A DNA stretch of 63,793 nt, the filler included, from Lenisia limosa (taxonomy: Eukaryota; Protista; Breviatea): the NCBI GenBank assembly GCA_001655205.1. It is 11 parts of 11 records of this genome, joined end to end, with 100 filler letters (N's around TTAATTAATTAA, not from the genome) between each part and the next. Parts side by side here need not be neighbours in the genome. Positions count along the whole stretch, not along the records: positions 5,425 to 36,610 come from LPNZ01009409.1; 10 more parts are not named here. One strand, written 5' to 3'. Below, piece after piece: positions 10,830 to 31,307 of this stretch; position 1 is the first letter of the stretch; each line of letters starts with the position of its first letter. The position numbers and the translations under genes were made by a program. The notes beneath the pieces were generated by a model. It ran no database searches. It saw only the letters and a list, made by a program, of their open reading frames with translations, and had not been told where the DNA came from.

Positions 10830-13800
10830 ACAATAATGAGCACAGAATCAAATGTCGAGAATAAATCTCCAAACTCACCTCATCAGTATCAGAGGAGTCT
10901 GTCATTCGTGACGATCTGATGTGCAAATGAGAATAATGGGCTTTCAGATATGAAAAAAAATGATGATTCGTCCCCTATTGTTGATATTTGGTATCACGGC
11001 TTGAGTCTGTTTGGTGTCAAATTCCCCTCCTTGTTAGCTCAAACCATTTTATCATATATTTAACACAATATTCGATACCAATATCTTGAAAAAACACTCC
11101 CCCCTCACGAGGTGGCAATTATTGAGCCGGCACGTTGGACTCGTCGCGGTCGGAAGGGCTAATATTTCAGTCAAGGGTTCATGTATCCCCATGTTTCAAA
11201 CTTAGTTCATGTTTCTAAATGGGAATACTCTCCTCGGATACCTTATCTATCCGCCTGCGCTGATACACGTCATCGGAGGCCTTGCCACGTTGCCGCTCCC
11301 CGATCCGATTCGGTACAGAGCCGCTCAATGATCGGTATTGACTACTTCGGCCAAGATAGCCCTCGGCTGAAGCCTTCTTCACGAGCTGGCCGAAGAGACC
11401 GATGGAGAGTGCTGAGGGGTGGGAACTGTGGAGTTTTTTGCGATGGTATCTGAATTAATACTGCCTTTCAACGATAGGGTAACACCGGCATTACAGCATT
11501 ACATGAATATCATATTATTATAGATATTATAATATTATATGATATCATATGTAGTCGATTAATCCTTAAAATTCCATCTTTCTGAGGTAAACAGTTGACC
11601 CACCTCCAATCAACAGTGTTGAAAGCGCAATACCGATGTCATAAAAGTCGAAGTACGTCCTCGATGATCCCTGGTTCTCAGTTCCACTCGAAACTTGTCT
11701 AAGCGGTCAGAGGGGAATCTATCCTTTTTGAGAAATCTGACTCAAGTCTAAGAATCTCTATGTTATCAAAGGGCCCATAACCAGACTTGATATCTCGGAG
11801 CCATCGTCGCTGCAAAACGTTATAAAGTCCGTGTTGACGGATGGTGGAGATGATATGATTGAGATTAGCACGGAAGACTGGAGGAAGGTCATCTTGCGAT
11901 CGCGAGTGCTGGAGAGTAAGATATGAACATGTCCAATGGAAAATCCAAGTTTTTCCTTATCCTAGAGGTGAAACAACATACTTCTCATTTAGCTATTATA
12001 TCCTAAAAACTAGAACAGCCGTTTCAGCCTACTTTCAGTGAGATAGCCTCATCAACCGCATGGTATTGGTCAGGATTGGGGAAAGGGTTCTAAATTGTCA
12101 GAGAAGACTGGAGGCTTCTTTTGCAAGCCAAAGTATCTCACCTCTCCTTCTCGATATGGAAGGACTATATGAAGGTACGCAGTCTCAAGTTCATCCTAAA
12201 TCCATGAAGGTGCGCACATCGTTTATTAGCAGGAGGGAAATAACAATCAAAGGAACAGAAAGTATTGATGTAAGCACGACCGCCGAGATTGCCCCTCCTT
12301 ACTTGCACAATGTAGAGGTCATGATTTTGGTTCTGCAGCACGAAGTTGGCAAGCCTTCCCTCATCATGGACAATGGCAACAATCTCTTTATTCAAAAGTG
12401 CTGAAAACCTGGGTGGAGTGAAACCATATACGTAGCTATTATATTGTAAAAAAACGTAACTAGAACAGAGCCCCTTAATGTTCTCTATCAAAGCTGGAAG
12501 AAACAATATCAGCAAAATTGGCCATCATACAGTTCTTTCTCCGAGGCAAATATGACGGGTATTGTTGAGGACTCTCTCACATAAATCGCCGCCAATGTGT
12601 CTTCTAAAGCTCCGACCTGCACTTATGATTTCGGTTTGCACTGTAATGAAAAAAGAGCGCCATCCAACACAAAAGATCTTCCATTCCTGTAACAAACCTT
12701 GCGTCCGACCATATCCGACGCTTGGTCAATGTTGGGTGTGGCACTCGTCGACGTCAAGTGCGCCATCAGACCAGCCGTGTAACTTGCTATGAAGAGCGCC
12801 TGACGTGTGAGTTCGTTAAACCTCGCTGTGCAATATTGTTGAAGTTACGATATAGCTGACCTTTCAGTTGTTCCAACCAAAACAAAGAATCTTGATATTT
12901 CTTCAAATAACGACCTTAATATTCCCACGCCACATACCTTCACAACATACCACGCTGCCGCAAAAATACGGCCTCCAGTAGCTATGTGTGTTACAAAAAG
13001 GGGAGGAAAAAAAGCAAAGAATATATCATATGGGGGTGAGAAATAATAAGGACTTATAATATTCAAAATTTCAACCCAATCATTCCAGTAATAAAAACAT
13101 CACATGTCTCATGCTTCCTGATCATTTAACCAAGAAACAAAAGAAGGATTTATAAATGGATGGCAGTGCAAACATACTAATAATATCGCCCGCAGGATTG
13201 ATGAAGAGCGTTGTAAACGACCACTATACAGTCAGTTGAAATCCGGAAAGACCAGATCTACGATGCTACAATTTCTTTTGATCGGCTCAAAACAAGATCC
13301 CCGTACCCAGACAGCTTGTTTGAAGGAGAAAATCTTTCCATTCTTCCAGAACATAATAGAGTTAGAAGACTTCTCAAAATGGACACAAAGCAGTGCAACA
13401 AGGATGATCTGGAAGGTTGGTAAATGAAGAGATATTAATTACACAAGTGTGTTGAAATAAGAAATAAATAAAGGGCATTTGGCCGAAGCTATCCACACTT
13501 ATTAGTTAATTCACCAATCATTTGCCTTACAACTCTATGCACACAGCTTATAGTTCAGACATCATTCACCTTTATCTTAAGCTCAAAATAGTAGTCAGGA
13601 TGTTTTGGGATAACATTCCTCCATTTAATAGGATATACAAGAACGCCCAAAAACTAACTGATATAGTCCCCACAAACTGCAATAAAATAGAAAATCCAGA
13701 GTCCAGTTGAAAAGGGCCTAAAAAGTCAATGCTTAGTCCACCGAAATCAAGGGGCAAATGGGGGATGACAACAAGGCAGTGAAACAAAAGGCTATCAAGT

Positions 13801-14701
13801 GATAATTAATTAGTAATAATTCTTGAATATGAAAGGTCACGAATATAGTGACTACTATGAACAATTCTAAATTAATTATACTCAAATATATCATATGTAT
13901 ATCATATCGATATATAATCGATATATACCAGCAGATTTCGACTCAAGATGAGTGTAACCCACTTGAACAGGACAAACGCATCAGACTCCCTCTCAGTGAT
14001 AGTGAGAATGCGAAGGCTGCTCCGATAAAAATTCGTTGAAACGTCCACTAAACGAAGATAGTCCTCTGTGAGGGGGAATGCTGGGGGGTGAGATAGTCCT
14101 CTGTGAGGGGGAATGCTGGGGGGTGAGATATCCTGTACTATTTCGCCACTCAATACATAAAGACCAGCAGAGAATCAGGAAGATCAATTAACATAAAAAA
14201 AAATTGACTTCGAGTGACTATTTGACCCATCAACATACATGGAAGACCAACGCGCATGCCTCCAGCCCGCACACGGAGAATTAAATCCACGTTAGAATCA
14301 ACAATCGTGAATTCTGGTTAAAAAAAAAAACAAGGTACTAAAAGGGTTGTCAAGGTACGAAGCAATTTGTCTCCACATATCAACATTAAATCCCGAAATC
14401 TTGGTACCTGATATCATGAGCATTCAGAGTATAATAAGTTTTTGTTATAAAGTTTGACATGCTCCCCATTACCCTGGTCACTGTGAGAGACATTGCAGAA
14501 GGGAGGGTCATGAGTCAGGACCACTTCAATTGTGTCATTGACGCCGTCTGAGCCAATGTGCATTGGAAACTCCACTTCACCTTCAAATATTGATGGTGAT
14601 GCTGTGGCAGTTTTCAAAAGAAATAAAGGCACGTAAAAGGACTGGGCAGCTATTGTTGCTGTGATGCTTAGCAGAAGCAACAACAAGACCTTGAGAAACA
14701 T
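10830..14701 (-). CDS. Probable multi-exon secreted or type II membrane protein of unknown function
   Basis: ATG at 14701 is followed by hydrophobic MFLKVLLLLLLSITATIAA. Several GT-AG-bounded open segments lie downstream (e.g. EFTIVDSNVDLILRVRAGG, EDYLRLVDVSTNFYRSS, FSALLNKEIVAIVHDEG, NPFPNPDQYHAVDEAISLK). The exon chain was not fully resolved and may be more than one gene. Confidence 0.4.
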
Positions 14702-15083
14702 GCTGCACCAGGAAGAGAACAACAAATAACTCCAATGATCACGATTTGTTTAGGTTTTCAGTAAATTAATATTTTTTGTATTTATTTTCTGTTTTTTTTT
14801 ACATTATATATGCAAAAAGTGGAAAAAGGAGGATCGATGGGAAAGGGTAGAATGGTGAGAAAAAAGAAAAACGGAAAAAAAAAGCCACCCGGGTACACTC
14901 GGGGTTAAAACACAATGTGTTATGTGGTAAATTCATACTTCCTCTTATTCTAATATCGTATTGAACTGAACAGAACTGAACTATTTTATTATTTAAGCTT
15001 TGATTCCCCTTTTTTTTGTTCCTCTTCCTATTCCCATTTGGATTGAAAAGGTATGTTGGTTAACTTTTATATTGCTTGAGAAT

Positions 15084-15170
15084 GTCTGTGACGAATAGCT
15101 TATCTGAGTGTGTGCATAACGATCAATACATGCCTCCCACTGATGCTTTCTAACGCTTGGCTACTGAGAT
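15084..15170 (+). ncRNA. Box C/D snoRNA candidate 1 (LSU rRNA guide)
   Basis: Box C GTGACGA 15088-94; CTGA at 15140 and 15164. The D guide AACGCTTGGCT (15152-62) is complementary to conserved LSU AGCCAAGCGUU. Confidence 0.7.
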
Positions 15171-15291
15171 TACTTGCTTCCTCATCAAAATATGTCTTTC
15201 AAATTCCCTCTCACTTTTTTCAGGAAGAGCGGCGGTCTCTGACCCGCACCAACTCTGGAGGTGAGCTTCATCAATAACCGTACTATTCTTC

Positions 15292-15366
15292 TGCCTGTGA
15301 CGATAAAACATGTTCATCACACCAATGACAACTGATTATTAAAACATGCACCACCAACTGACGGCA
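15292..15366 (+). ncRNA. Box C/D snoRNA, snR55/U33-like (SSU Um1269 yeast numbering)
   Basis: Terminal stem TGCC/GGCA, box C GTGACGA 15297-303, box D CTGA 15358-61. The guide CATGCACCACCA is complementary to SSU UGGUGGUGCAUG, and the D+5 rule lands on the U equivalent to yeast U1269. Confidence 0.85.
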
Positions 15367-15505
15367 TCATTTCTTATTAACATTTTCCAACTCGGATCCT
15401 CTTCTTATTATTTTAGCGAACCGCTCCAACCACTCAAATGAGTGACCAATCAGCAGTCCAATATTCTAATTGTAAGCCACATGAACTTTTCCTTCTTTCG
15501 TCCCC

Positions 15506-15591
15506 ATTGATGATGAGACTATACGACGGTATATGAAGTGTTCTACTGTTTATTATGACAGTGGTTACCTGATTTTAAAGCCTTCTGAAAT
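15506..15591 (+). ncRNA. Box C/D snoRNA, snR79-like (SSU Cm1007 yeast numbering)
   Basis: Box C ATGATGA 15510-16; guide TACGACGGTAT (15522-32) complementary to SSU AUACCGUCGUA, followed by D' ATGA; terminal box D CTGA 15585-88. D'+5 falls on the second C of AUACCG. Confidence 0.8.
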
Positions 15592-16136
15592 TCCTTTTTA
15601 AAATTCACCTAATTCCTCTTTAACCTCATTAACGTATTTAGATTTAAAGCCGTCTCGCATGCGTCAGAAGTTGCCTAGTAGTATTTCTATTAATACACAT
15701 CTATTTAGTCATACACCGATTTTCTGGATTTGTTTTTTAAAAAAAGAGAGTCGGTTTTGTTGCCAGAATCGTGGGGCAGCAGACTGACAGTGAACGTAAA
15801 AAAATTTGGGAAAACCAAAAAGAGTAGATGCCTCCTGGGAATTGTATATTACATAAATGGTTGACTGCGAGTTATTGATTTTTGGATGTTACGTCGTTCG
15901 ATTTGTTTTGATACCCATGATATATTAGATATGCACGCCATTCACTGCTTGGAAAGGCTTCAAAGAAAGGCCAGTAAATTGTAATGTACAAACAAGAAAT
16001 CCATTGGAAAAGAGAAACTTACTACTGTCAAACCGAAAATCAAAGCTTACATGCCTAAATCGTGAATCCAGAAAGAATTTTCAAAAATGTATGAACATTT
16101 TAAAGAACCTCCCAGCAATCATGACATGAAAATACT

Positions 16137-16973
16137 TCATAGTCTCATCCACATACGAGGGGGCATTTGAGGCATTTGAGGCATCTGGGGCATTCCCATG
16201 GGCATGCCACGGCCTAAAAAAAATGTCAAACAATCCTCATAACAGCATCGATGCAAAGAGGCAAGCTAACCTTGAGGCATCATAGCGGCAGCGGCGGGGG
16301 CACCAACACCAGGGGCAGCGCCAGTCAAACCCTGAAAGCTCAGAAAGGTTGCAGAAAGGGAGAAAAGAAACTGCGAATGGATTACGTACCCTGACATACC
16401 TGAGGAGCCTGAGCAGCAGTAGCGGCAGGGGGAAGACCACGACCAGCGGGACGACCCTGACCAGGGAGTACCGCAACAGCTGAACAAAGGTCAGTCCTGC
16501 TCCAACAAAAACCAGCAAAGGGTTACAATTCAAAAGCGTTTCCTTATTGTGACCAACATACCAGCAGGGTTAACTCGAGCCTTGGCTGAATCGTTGGGAG
16601 GAGGACCGAACACTGATAGAGAGACGATTGTATCACCACGAACAATCACAAATCCGACTGTTCTCTTCTCCTCACGCTCTTTGCCGTTCTTAGGCTTAAG
16701 TTTCCTGGGAAAAGGTAAGGAGAGGCAAAGAAGAAGTATCACAAACCTGTACTCATCAGTATCTGCCATTACGATGTTCATATGACGATCAAATGCCATG
16801 AATTTGCCAATCAGAACCCTGCCGTCAACCATCGTGGCTTTCATACGATAGTTCACGTAGCTCAAGAATTTTGAAGACTTAGTCATTGCCTGTAGTGTTA
16901 TTAAACGAATCAAATAACAAAAAAAGCAGGTCTGATGCAAAGTTCCCTCAAAAAAATCCAAACTTCTTACCAT
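16137..16973 (-). CDS. SNRPB: Small nuclear ribonucleoprotein-associated protein B (SmB), multi-exon
   Basis: ATG|gtaag then AMTKSSKFLSYVNYRMKATMVDGRVLIGKFMAFDRHMNIVMADTDEYR...EKRTVGFVIVRGDTIVSLSVFGPPP, followed by a Pro/Gly/Met-rich tail (GRGMPMGMPQMPQM). Confidence 0.95.
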
Positions 16974-17374: not shown

Positions 17375-19598
17375 ATGAGTTTTGATGATCATTGTGGCTC
17401 TTTGGGTGCCAATATGTACCCAGATCAGTTGGTGGGGTACCAATTCTTGGAAAAACTGGATAGATATAGTTATAGAAGGAGGCGTTTGGTTTAATCATCA
17501 TAAGTTGTGTTTTCTATCTTCCCCCTTTGTAGACGTATGATGGAGATCCTAATCCAGCAGGTCTCCCGGGTTTTCCCACGGCTACGTACCGGAATCACAG
17601 GGCACCAGACAGCAACCGAATATTCTCCTAATGGGATTGAGACGGTGGGAGCATGTTCACTCCTTTGCTTTGATCACCAATATGCTCTTTATATTCCGAT
17701 TGAATGCAAGATGGGGGGGGGGGGGGNNNNNNNNNNNNNNNNNNNNNNNNNNNNNNNNNNNNNNNNNNNNNNNNNNNNNNNNNNNNTAAACAATAGCTTC
17801 AGGTAAATATTTAACAGGGTGCACCCGTGTACCTCATTTCCAAGGTCTGGCAAGTCGTCTATCCAGAGGGTGGTCTTCGAGAAAATGTCCCCAAACGAAA
17901 CACAATACCTTGAAAGCACTTCGAAAATCGACAAATCAAGTGGGGGCCTTGTTTTGTTTTGACTTCCTTTGAACATTATTCCAGATCAGAAATGCAGAAT
18001 TCCATAATGGTTGTAGAAGTAGAGCACAGCAGCTTCGTGCAATTCCAGATCTGGGATATCCCGGGCCAGCTGGACCATTCTGACCCGAAAGTCTTCAATG
18101 CCGAGCGAATGTTTTCTTCTTGCGGTGCCGTAGTGTTCGTTATTGATGCGCAGGTATGCTGGAGCTCAGTGTCATTTATGTGTTTATACTATATCATAGT
18201 AATATATGATACTATGTCTTGGACTTCAAAATAAGTACACCCAATATCACCTGTGGTCCATTACCAACATTAGGACGAATACAACAGTGCGATCGAGAAA
18301 CTCCAGCACACCATCCGGTCTGCGTATCAGATCAACAAGGACATCTCCTTTGAGGTTTTTGTGCATAAGGTTGATGGCCTCTCTGACGACCACAAAATCC
18401 GTAGGGAGGCATTTTGCGTTTGTATTTCTCTTAATAATTGGTAACAGTACGTAACGTTTTAGAATGCCAAAGAGACATTCAGGGCCAAGTTGAGGACGAG
18501 CTCCTTGGTGTGGGCTTCTCTCCCATTCTGAACTTCTATCTGACTTCGATTTACGACCACTCGTGGGGAGGGGGGGGGTACTAGCCTGGCATAAAACCCT
18601 AAGAATAACTACATTGCCAATATGTTGGATAGGTTTATAGAAGGCTGAACTCTGAATTGTGAGGAATGACGTGGTAATACAGCAACTGCATACCCTTTGT
18701 TAACGAGATAGAGGGTGTAGCTTCGCCAGGTACACAACCTCTTTTATAGTATTGATAATTTAGAATTTTTGAGGCTTTTTCGAGGGTCATCCAAGGCCTC
18801 CTCCCCCAAATTGAAACTCTTGAAAATCTTCTTGATAACCTGAACGAGGTGGGAGGGTAATCAAGTTCATTAATGTGCATAATTACATACAATTTCTGGA
18901 TAGTATCTTTTTGAACCTCTCTGTTTAACACTACAGAAATGTGGAATGGAAAAGTCCTTCTTATTTGATGTGTCAAGGTTTGTGGATATTATTATTTTAA
19001 ATTGACGGTCAAAAATTTAGACCTTGGTTTCAATCTTTTCCTCTCACATCTTCAGTAAGGTCTATGTGGCCACCGATTCCTCCACAGTGGAACTACAGAA
19101 GTACGAAGTCTGCAGTGATCTTGTGGATCTGCTGTTTGATATTGCTTACATCTACGGCGGCGGCGATGATGATGAACTGAACTACGTGGCAAACTCCTCG
19201 GCTGTCGTTCGTCTCAGCAACGGTCCGCGGAGGAGCTGGTCTTCGGATAATATGCATTTTCGGGCCTGTCAATTTGAATGATCAGAAATGGGAAAGGGAG
19301 TATTATTTCTTAAACTAAATGTCTGTCTAATTTGATACCCCACTGACCCTTCAGGCTATATCCTCCTCTTGATTGAGGTCTCAGAGTACTTGGCGCTTGT
19401 GTCCATTATTCGAGCTGACACTTTCGATAATAGCAAGGGTTGGGGGTTGAGTCTCTAATTGATTTACTGTCAGAAACAGCCTGTCATTTTATTCCTTTTG
19501 AATGTCTCGCATTTCTCACCCTCCCTCCAGGCCTCATCCTGAGCAATATGAAGTCATTTAAGGAGGGCGTGTGTGAACTATTTGAGACTGACATTTAA
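17375..19598 (+). CDS. RRAGC: Ras-related GTP-binding protein RagC/D (Gtr2), multi-exon
   Basis: [72 protein letters not shown] and KVYVATDS...YEVCSDLVD; stop TAA at 19596-98. Confidence 0.95.
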
Positions 19599-31078: not shown

Positions 31079-31307
31079 GTGAAGGGGGTCAGCGTCCCCC
31101 GTAATTATTTCAAATTGGTTGGTGGCTACTGCAAGTGTGCAAGCAATCTAAAAAAGAGGCAGATGACAGGCAGCAGTCAAGCAGCAGTAAGCAGGGCTGA
31201 GTGCATTTTTAAATTCGTAAAATGAACTGAACTGAAGTCACCTATTTACTTTTATTTTGATTTCTGAATAAAAAAGGTCCCTTTTATACCCGTTTAAAGT
31301 AAACACA

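Follow-up and report, generated by a model that had tools for sequence, protein, structure and literature searches.

A stretch of the genome of the anaerobic breviate Lenisia limosa probably harbors an independently transcribed gene of ~0.7-1 kb with four short exons, whose useful products would be three box C/D small nucleolar RNAs (snoRNAs) carried in its introns. The gene lies on the plus strand at about 15000-15800 of a joined stretch of 63,793 nucleotides (nt; assembly GCA_001655205.1), here called the window; all coordinates are positions of the whole window unless a contig is named, and the snoRNAs are referred to, from 5′ to 3′, as sno1, sno2 and sno3. A preliminary description of this DNA had proposed a non-coding snoRNA host gene in the style of UHG and GAS5 in a protist, a proposal now supported by the pairing of the snoRNAs with the organism’s own ribosomal RNA (rRNA), by the shortness of the open reading frame (ORF) and by the opposite-strand genes on both flanks. 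The protist assignment is itself upheld by the neighboring SmB gene, the exons of which are identical to a Lenisia limosa transcriptome protein.

The three consecutive GT-AG intervals that had been described as introns are present at exactly the positions originally given (Table 1). They start with GTATGT, GTGAGC and GTAAGC and end in TTTTTTCAG, TTATTTTAG and GTATTTAG, i.e., in pyrimidine-rich tracts followed by CAG or TAG. The exon lengths given at the time (38-56 nt) were one too many, the two internal exons measuring 37 and 55 nt. We compared these introns with Lenisia introns proven by mapping of the SmB and P0 genes (n=6, 36-82 nt), which start with GTTTGT, GTATGT, GTATGT, GTTAGC, GTAAGC and GTAAGC, and each of which has a YTNAY motif 8-15 nt upstream of its YAG. 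All six boundaries of the host gene fit the splice consensus of these proven introns. The host introns are longer than ordinary Lenisia introns by 90-100 nt, which is about one snoRNA length, and each consensus GT-AG interval contains a single snoRNA at a fixed position: the distance from the 5′ splice site to the C box is 37, 36 and 38 nt in sno1, sno2 and sno3, respectively, and that from the D box to the 3′ splice site is 56, 55 and 53 nt (taking the sno3 D box as 15585-88). The position of the snoRNA within the intron is thus fixed to within 3 nt across all three units.

Each intron contains the C box it had been credited with (GTGACGA, GTGACGA and ATGATGA), and the reported D box and antisense element of 11-12 nt were likewise borne out, with guides of 11, 12 and 11 nt, that of sno3 adjoining the D′ box. 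The D box is CUGA in all three units, and the sno3 C box, AUGAUGA, fully matches the RUGAUGA consensus. Internal C′/D′ boxes are seen in every unit (CUGA...UGAUGC in sno1, AUGA-CAA-CUGAUUA in sno2 and AUGA...hairpin...CUGAUUU in sno3); in sno3 the hairpin lies at about 15543-64, and four more guide pairs can be formed from 15517.

Since a eukaryotic large-subunit (LSU) rRNA model found nothing in the organism’s own genome, and a small-subunit (SSU) model found fragments only, we gathered the rRNA by short patterns. The genome assembly comprises 49 Mb in 11,727 contigs, across which the ribosomal DNA (rDNA) is shattered, and ~2 kb of rRNA was recovered; the contigs used were C66 (L024) for the LSU and C6123 (L001) and C10892 (L054) for the SSU. 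The antisense elements had been matched to conserved rRNA segments, and the pairing holds for Lenisia’s own LSU and SSU over 11, 12 and 11 bp. The sno1 guide is perfectly complementary to C66, where its target lies within GGCAGCCAAGCGTTC, and the sno2 guide to C6123, with its target within GGGTGGTGGTGCATGG. The sno3 target falls on a contig break: C10892 ends ...GATACCGT (...GATCAGATACCGT) and C6123 begins TCGTAGTCC, the contiguous target GATACCGTCGTAGT being found only in one degenerate rDNA copy. Duplex energies for sno1, sno2 and sno3 are -19.0, -23.8 and -19.0 kcal/mol, the partners being CAGCCAAGCGTTC of the organism’s own LSU for sno1 and GATACCGTCGTAGTCC for sno3.

Taking the fifth nucleotide upstream of the D or D′ box as the target, each guide can be assigned a predicted methylation site (target given before the slash). 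The sno2 target is the second U of UGGUGGUGCAUG in the SSU (UGGU/GGUGCAUG), and follows by 78 nt the m1acp3-pseudouridine landmark, the U in UUUGACUCAAC, the same spacing as between positions 1191 and 1269 of yeast. That of sno3 is the second C of AUACCG in the SSU (AUACC/GUCGUA), 263 nt 5′ of the sno2 site, compared with 262 nt in yeast and 261 nt in Neurospora. These spacings support the equivalents named in the preliminary description, namely yeast Um1269 as the predicted site of sno2 and yeast Cm1007 (snR79) as that of sno3. Both are known methylated sites (PMC2780460), and the guide for Um1269 is snR55 in yeast and U33 in human, with U33/snoR34 serving the site in plants (PMC2780460, PMC8053127). 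The sno1 target is the second C of AGCCAAG in the LSU (GGCAGCC/AAGCG), adjoining the peptidyl-transferase center; counted from it, the middle G of CAGGGAUAAC is found 21 nt to the 5′ side and the A-loop U 85 nt to the 3′ side. The Arabidopsis positions 2816, 2837 and 2922 have identical spacings (PMC8583080, PMC8053127), and the sno1 site would accordingly be the equivalent of Arabidopsis Cm2837 (snoR24), E. coli C2467 and yeast C2836. Published tables list Cm2837/snoR24 with no counterpart in yeast or human (PMC8583080, PMC8053127, PMC11542601). All three predicted sites coincide with positions that are methylated in other eukaryotes, and would presumably be methylated in Lenisia as well.

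Bare 11-mers complementary to rRNA are common, at ~10 per 31 kb when compared with 2 kb of rRNA. When the guide was combined with an adjacent box and a C box at most 110 nt upstream, only three occurrences were found on both strands of the 31-kb piece that contains the gene, all of them in these introns, as against 0.05 per strand, or ~0.1 per piece, in shuffled sequence. The full pattern, which requires both splice sites and the C and D boxes, spaced as seen here, matches exactly these three intervals, as against 0.0 matches per shuffled 31 kb. Across the genome, the pattern GTRWGY-N29-33-RTGAYGA-N55-85-CTGA gave 46 matches versus 19 for a reversed control. Within the 31-kb piece, both combinations are far beyond chance and confined to the three intervals.

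One of these genome-wide matches led to a second and larger host gene, on contig C8858 (L168, G000:C8858:8000-17000). It has at least seven snoRNA-bearing introns of 156-165 nt with one snoRNA each, separated by exons of ~55-75 nt that end CAAG|GTTTG. Across at least six units, the 5′ splice site lies 36-41 nt from the C box, and the D box 51-55 nt from the 3′ splice site. The most repeated snoRNA, present in at least seven copies, has the C box GAUGACGA, in which the GUGACGA type is found again, and pairs with the organism’s own LSU at GUGAGCUGGGUU; it targets an A that follows the A-loop U by 25 nt and is the predicted equivalent of yeast Am2946 (snR71/U29). There are also at least five copies of another box C/D-like RNA (guide ...GGATACCWAGGGATTCAA-CTGA, with a poor C box, UAUGAGG), and two of a third. 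Because this host repeats the architecture, the geometry and the UGACGA variant, we regard them as properties of the organism rather than an accident of a single locus.

Upstream of the first intron we noted what appear to be promoter elements (Table 1), which suggest that transcription of the gene begins independently near 15006-17, giving an exon 1 of ~45 nt. Tandem GAACT also precedes the P0 gene (31224-37; region 31224-31290) and an RPL27 gene elsewhere, and the distance from (GAACT)n to CYCTTTT is 26 nt in the host gene, 42 nt in P0 and 44 nt in RPL27. In the genome, TGAACTGAACWGAA has 313 matches versus 3 for a reversed control. CYCTTTT stands 20-47 nt downstream of (GAACT)n on the same strand in 11 of 23 loci, and never upstream or on the reverse complement. 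The same directional order, often with TATTTAAGC in between, is seen at loci L027-L053, which include many unidentified genes. We considered (GAACT)n as a motif specific to ribosomal-protein genes and rejected this, as other copies precede unidentified units and ORFs that returned no Pfam match. Since the motif is so widespread, it is best described as a general strong-promoter architecture, and does not prove co-regulation with ribosomal-protein genes. Separately, units of ~110-130 nt stand behind (GAACT)n at L027, L031, L034, L039, L041 and L052; they contain GGATCGAGCC, which resembles the B box of transfer RNA (tRNA) genes, end in a T run and gave no Rfam or ARAGORN match. They may represent a new small-RNA gene family or a short interspersed element (SINE).

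Table 1. Features of the proposed snoRNA host gene, its surroundings and the second host gene
Feature	Position	Strand	Details
sno1	15084..15171	+	C GTGACGA 15088-94; D′ CTGA 15104-07; C′ TGATGC 15141-46; guide AACGCTTGGCT 15152-62; D CTGA 15164-67
sno2	15292..15366	+	C GTGACGA 15297-303; D′ ATGA 15325-28; C′ TGATTA 15333-38; guide CATGCACCACCA 15345-56; D CTGA 15358-61
sno3	15506..15592	+	C ATGATGA 15510-16; guide TACGACGGTAT 15522-32; D′ ATGA 15533-36; C′ TGATTT 15570-75; D CTGA 15585-88
Exon 1 (putative)	15006..15050	+	begins within CCCCTTTTTTTT, initiator-like CYCTTTT; ends AAAAG|GT
Intron 1	15051..15223	+	173 nt; GTATGT...CTCACTTTTTTCAG; splice signals as in SmB and P0 introns
Exon 2	15224..15260	+	37 nt; 65% G+C
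Intron 2	15261..15416	+	156 nt; GTGAGC...TTATTATTTTAG
Exon 3	15417..15471	+	55 nt; site of the earliest ATG (15438) in the spliced model
Intron 3	15472..15641	+	170 nt; GTAAGC...ATTAACGTATTTAG
Exon 4	15642..15800	+	start firm; reaches no farther than the 3′ terminus of SmB (convergent)
Upstream promoter motif	14963..14982	+	four tandem pentamers, GAACT-GAACA-GAACT-GAACT; same tandem motif upstream of P0
TATA-like element	14990..14998	+	TATTTAAGC, read directly; TATTTAAGC/TATTTAAGT also after (GAACT)n at L027, L041 and L052
Pyrimidine tract	15006-15017	+	CCCCTTTTTTTT; CYCTTTT, 26 nt downstream of (GAACT)n
SmB gene	16152-16889	-	convergent, downstream; exons identical to EukProt EP01086_Lenisia_limosa_P014800
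Second snoRNA host gene	C8858 ~12700-15300 (~2.8 kb)	-	stops in all frames; interrupted by assembly gaps

The earlier observation that the exons hold no credible ORF stands: stop codons occur in all frames of the spliced model, and no ORF exceeds 59 codons. The sole ORF (59 codons, 180 bp) runs from the first ATG, at 15438 in exon 3, to a stop at 15785-87. Were it a coding sequence, the gene would make a 59-residue micro-protein and bear its snoRNAs in introns as ribosomal-protein hosts do, and the ORF does open at the first AUG of the spliced model and stop in the last exon. We consider this very unlikely, as the ATG comes only after two of the three introns, the sequence is of low complexity, rich in Cys, Phe and Ser, and without a recognizable domain, and a Pfam search with its 47-codon exon-4 part (15644-15784) gave nothing at E <=10. 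The C8858 host, in addition, has stops throughout in all frames. Moreover, Neurospora hosts judged to be non-coding carry ORFs of 159-267 bp, and the 180-bp ORF thus falls within the range of such hosts (PMC2780460). The flanking genes, an ORF at 14414-14725 and SmB (stop codon 16149-51), both lie on the minus strand, so a longer coding gene cannot have the unit as its 5′ portion.

It is also conceivable that the snoRNAs are real but are released from a polycistronic precursor by an RNase III-type cut and exonuclease trimming, the GT...AG intervals being incidental. Three snoRNAs on the same strand within 500 nt do look like a cluster of the sort found in plants, trypanosomes and some yeast, the splicing of the host gene is itself a prediction, and sno1 and sno3 are without good terminal stems. 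Yet all six boundaries fit the proven splice consensus, including branch-like YTNAY motifs 8-15 nt before the YAG, and the boundary distances agree within 3 nt in the three units, with at least six C8858 units alongside them. The enrichment of the spacing between 5′ splice site and C box across the genome (46 versus 19) and the absence of the full pattern from shuffled sequence likewise speak for introns, making a polycistronic origin unlikely. That the three RNAs are decayed pseudogenes or chance look-alikes with no present function is less probable still. The non-consensus GUGACGA boxes of two units, the weak or absent terminal stems of two, and the lack of an Rfam match above threshold could be taken as signs of decay, but each guide pairs perfectly over its 11-12 nt, and counting five nucleotides from the box leads to known methylated positions in three cases out of three. 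The GUGACGA-type box, furthermore, is also carried by at least six copies of the Am2946-type C8858 snoRNA, and the chance expectation is a mere ~0.1 per piece. A genome-wide search for paralogues of the cluster found none; being single-copy, it would hold the only genes for three sites, two of which are widely conserved.

Against the proposed non-coding host gene, besides the ORF at its first AUG, a number of points must be counted. Splicing, polyadenylation, snoRNA accumulation and methylation are all processes that we infer. The C boxes of sno1 and sno2 depart from RUGAUGA at position 5, and the sno3 D box is ambiguous; we prefer 15585-88 over 15569-72, because its 53 nt to the 3′ splice site resemble the 56 and 55 nt of the other two. 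As for the two recognizable terminal stems previously ascribed to the snoRNAs, that of sno2 is clear (UGCC/GGCA, 4 bp, -6.4 kcal/mol), while sno1 has a marginal one (-1.5 kcal/mol) and sno3 has none; no significant external stems were found around the snoRNAs. There is only one convincing guide per snoRNA: the spacers that might hold second guides, at the D′ box of sno1 and the D box of sno3, are just 9 nt long, and the complement of an alternative sno3 D guide has no match in the recovered rRNA. About two-thirds of the rRNA is absent from the assembly, and the search for second guides covered the ~2 kb recovered. Rfam at gathering thresholds gave no match over the whole piece. Finally, none of the metagenome contigs with relatives of SmB (best ~50% identity) carries any of the three snoRNAs.

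Taken together, the evidence favors a spliced, non-coding host, for which we propose the following pathway. RNA polymerase II would start in the pyrimidine tract near 15006-15017, below (GAACT)4 and a TATA-like box, and splicing would remove the three introns of 156-173 nt, each snoRNA being set off from the 5′ splice site by 36-38 nt and from the 3′ splice site by 53-56 nt. By analogy with the intronic snoRNAs of animals and fungi, core proteins would assemble on the pre-RNA, and exonucleolytic trimming would free the snoRNAs from the debranched lariat. The mature RNAs of ~70-85 nt would then guide 2′-O-methylation by fibrillarin at the three sites with which they pair. The spliced exon RNA, with its 59-codon ORF only, would most likely be a by-product, as in UHG, GAS5 and the Neurospora cluster hosts.

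The D′ element of sno2 can pair with the LSU immediately 5′ of the A loop, but over no more than 8 bp, and resembles a degenerate copy of the sno2 D guide; it may be a decayed second guide. Plant snoR34 has been reported as a guide for both 18S U1273 and 25S G2918. The two halves of sno2 (15304-15328 and 15339-15361) also resemble an internal duplication (AAAACATGTTCATCACACCA-ATGA versus AAAACATGCACCACCAA-CTGA).

The SSU rDNA assembly breaks right after ...GATACCGT, inside the sno3 target. From the break-point U, contig C8705 (L057) runs into non-rRNA sequence (TGATGGTGCGGAGCG...), in which GCGG could pair with the exon end. Some rDNA copies may thus contain an insertion after SSU ...GATACCGU, either a group-I-like intron or another element; an Rfam search found no intron match. 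In addition, degenerate, internally deleted SSU rDNA fragments lie inside ordinary contigs, at L021 (C2871:~700-830) and L056 (C6212:24382-25480), and are rDNA pseudogene pieces.

As to the neighboring genes, the SmB exons match EP01086_Lenisia_limosa_P014800 residue for residue. We mapped four introns of ~42-82 nt in this gene, and a fifth probably lies between its first two codons. The public SmB model (P0001, 206 amino acids) reads through introns and is mis-annotated relative to the transcriptome protein, which has 164 amino acids. Farther downstream, a short N run (assembly gap) at ~17750-17815 lies inside the region of a neighboring Gtr/Rag-type GTPase gene.

The annotation of protist snoRNAs is acknowledged to be very poor (PMC11028025), and our literature searches on snoRNAs of breviates or apusomonads found no paper. 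This locus and the C8858 host thus offer concrete gene models for breviates, and place a gene type with useless exons and useful introns, in an unusually rigid geometry, in a lineage that branches just outside animals and fungi. Local peculiarities include the very small exons, the rigid snoRNA placement, the recurrent UGACGA C box and the plant-type Cm2837 site. The spacings of about 37 and 53-56 nt, together with the UGACGA C box, make a simple rule for finding other Lenisia snoRNAs, to which ORF-based annotation is blind, and they also draw attention to gene models in which introns are wrongly read as coding, the database model of SmB being one. The predicted sites inform the map of ancestral rRNA methylation, as one is universal, one mainly fungal so far and one tabulated in plants; the occurrence of Cm2837, a plant-type LSU site, in a protist allied to animals and fungi would be new information. 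One could go further and imagine that splicing-coupled hosts with one snoRNA per intron, started from a pyrimidine (TCT/TOP-like, i.e., terminal oligopyrimidine-like) initiator common to ribosomal-protein genes and built with fixed splice-site distances, are Lenisia’s default route to box C/D snoRNAs. We regard this as doubtful; if true, the common ancestor that breviates and apusomonads share with animals and fungi would already have had the UHG/GAS5 arrangement, linked to ribosome-gene promoters, instead of animals and fungi having acquired it separately. We judge the finding to be sound and useful for annotation and for the question of ancestral snoRNA organization, and no surprise to a specialist.

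Among known systems, the gene resembles vertebrate UHG (SNHG1) and GAS5 in having multiple exons, no meaningful ORF and a single box C/D snoRNA in each intron, which precedes the 3′ splice site by a short and constant spacing, as well as a first exon that starts in a pyrimidine tract. Unlike them, it belongs to Breviatea and is built on a far smaller scale, with exons of 37-55 nt and introns of 156-173 nt, and its pyrimidine motif is a general promoter feature of the genome and not specific to translation genes. Hirose and Steitz reportedly found in 2001 that mammalian snoRNAs lie ~70-80 nt from the 3′ splice site; the distance in Lenisia is ~55 nt. In yeast, snR55 travels with snR57 and snR61, whereas the snR55-type snoRNA of Lenisia is flanked by an snR79-type and a plant-snoR24-type snoRNA.

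Of the individual snoRNAs, sno2 aligns end to end with the SNORD33/Z195/U32-U33 family (RF00133; 20.4 bits, E 1.6 in a 1.5-kb search) and with C. elegans sn1502 (RF01189; 25 bits, E 0.016), and its D-box guide is in the same register as in the yeast snR55/SNORD33 family, so that the same U would be targeted. Unlike true members, it stays at 20-25 bits versus gathering thresholds of 44 and 60, and the similarity resides mostly in the boxes and the guide. Common descent with the U33/snR55 family is plausible, and sno2 is predicted to act like U33/snR55, but on sequence grounds we do not file it as a family member. Like Arabidopsis snoR24, sno1 is predicted to methylate the LSU cytidine 25S Cm2837; unlike snoR24, it shows no detectable similarity outside the guide, and it had no Rfam match at E <=10. 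As for sno3, its partial match to C. elegans sn3071 (RF01166; 17 bits) covers the C box and the guide, which in both directly follows the C box. Its predicted target is the C used by yeast snR79 and N. crassa CD18 (18S Cm1007), although in CD18 the D guide serves this site and in sno3 the D′ guide (PMC2780460).

Non-coding snoRNA host genes are a type already known from animals and fungi (PMC2780460), and Neurospora crassa clusters I-V offer the nearest fungal comparison. The composition of the clusters is not shared, and splicing has been confirmed by reverse transcription-polymerase chain reaction in Neurospora, while that of the Lenisia host is predicted. Nevertheless, the Neurospora hosts are likewise non-coding, with short ORFs and canonical splice sites around each snoRNA, and likewise encode snR55- and snR79-type snoRNAs in their introns (PMC2780460).

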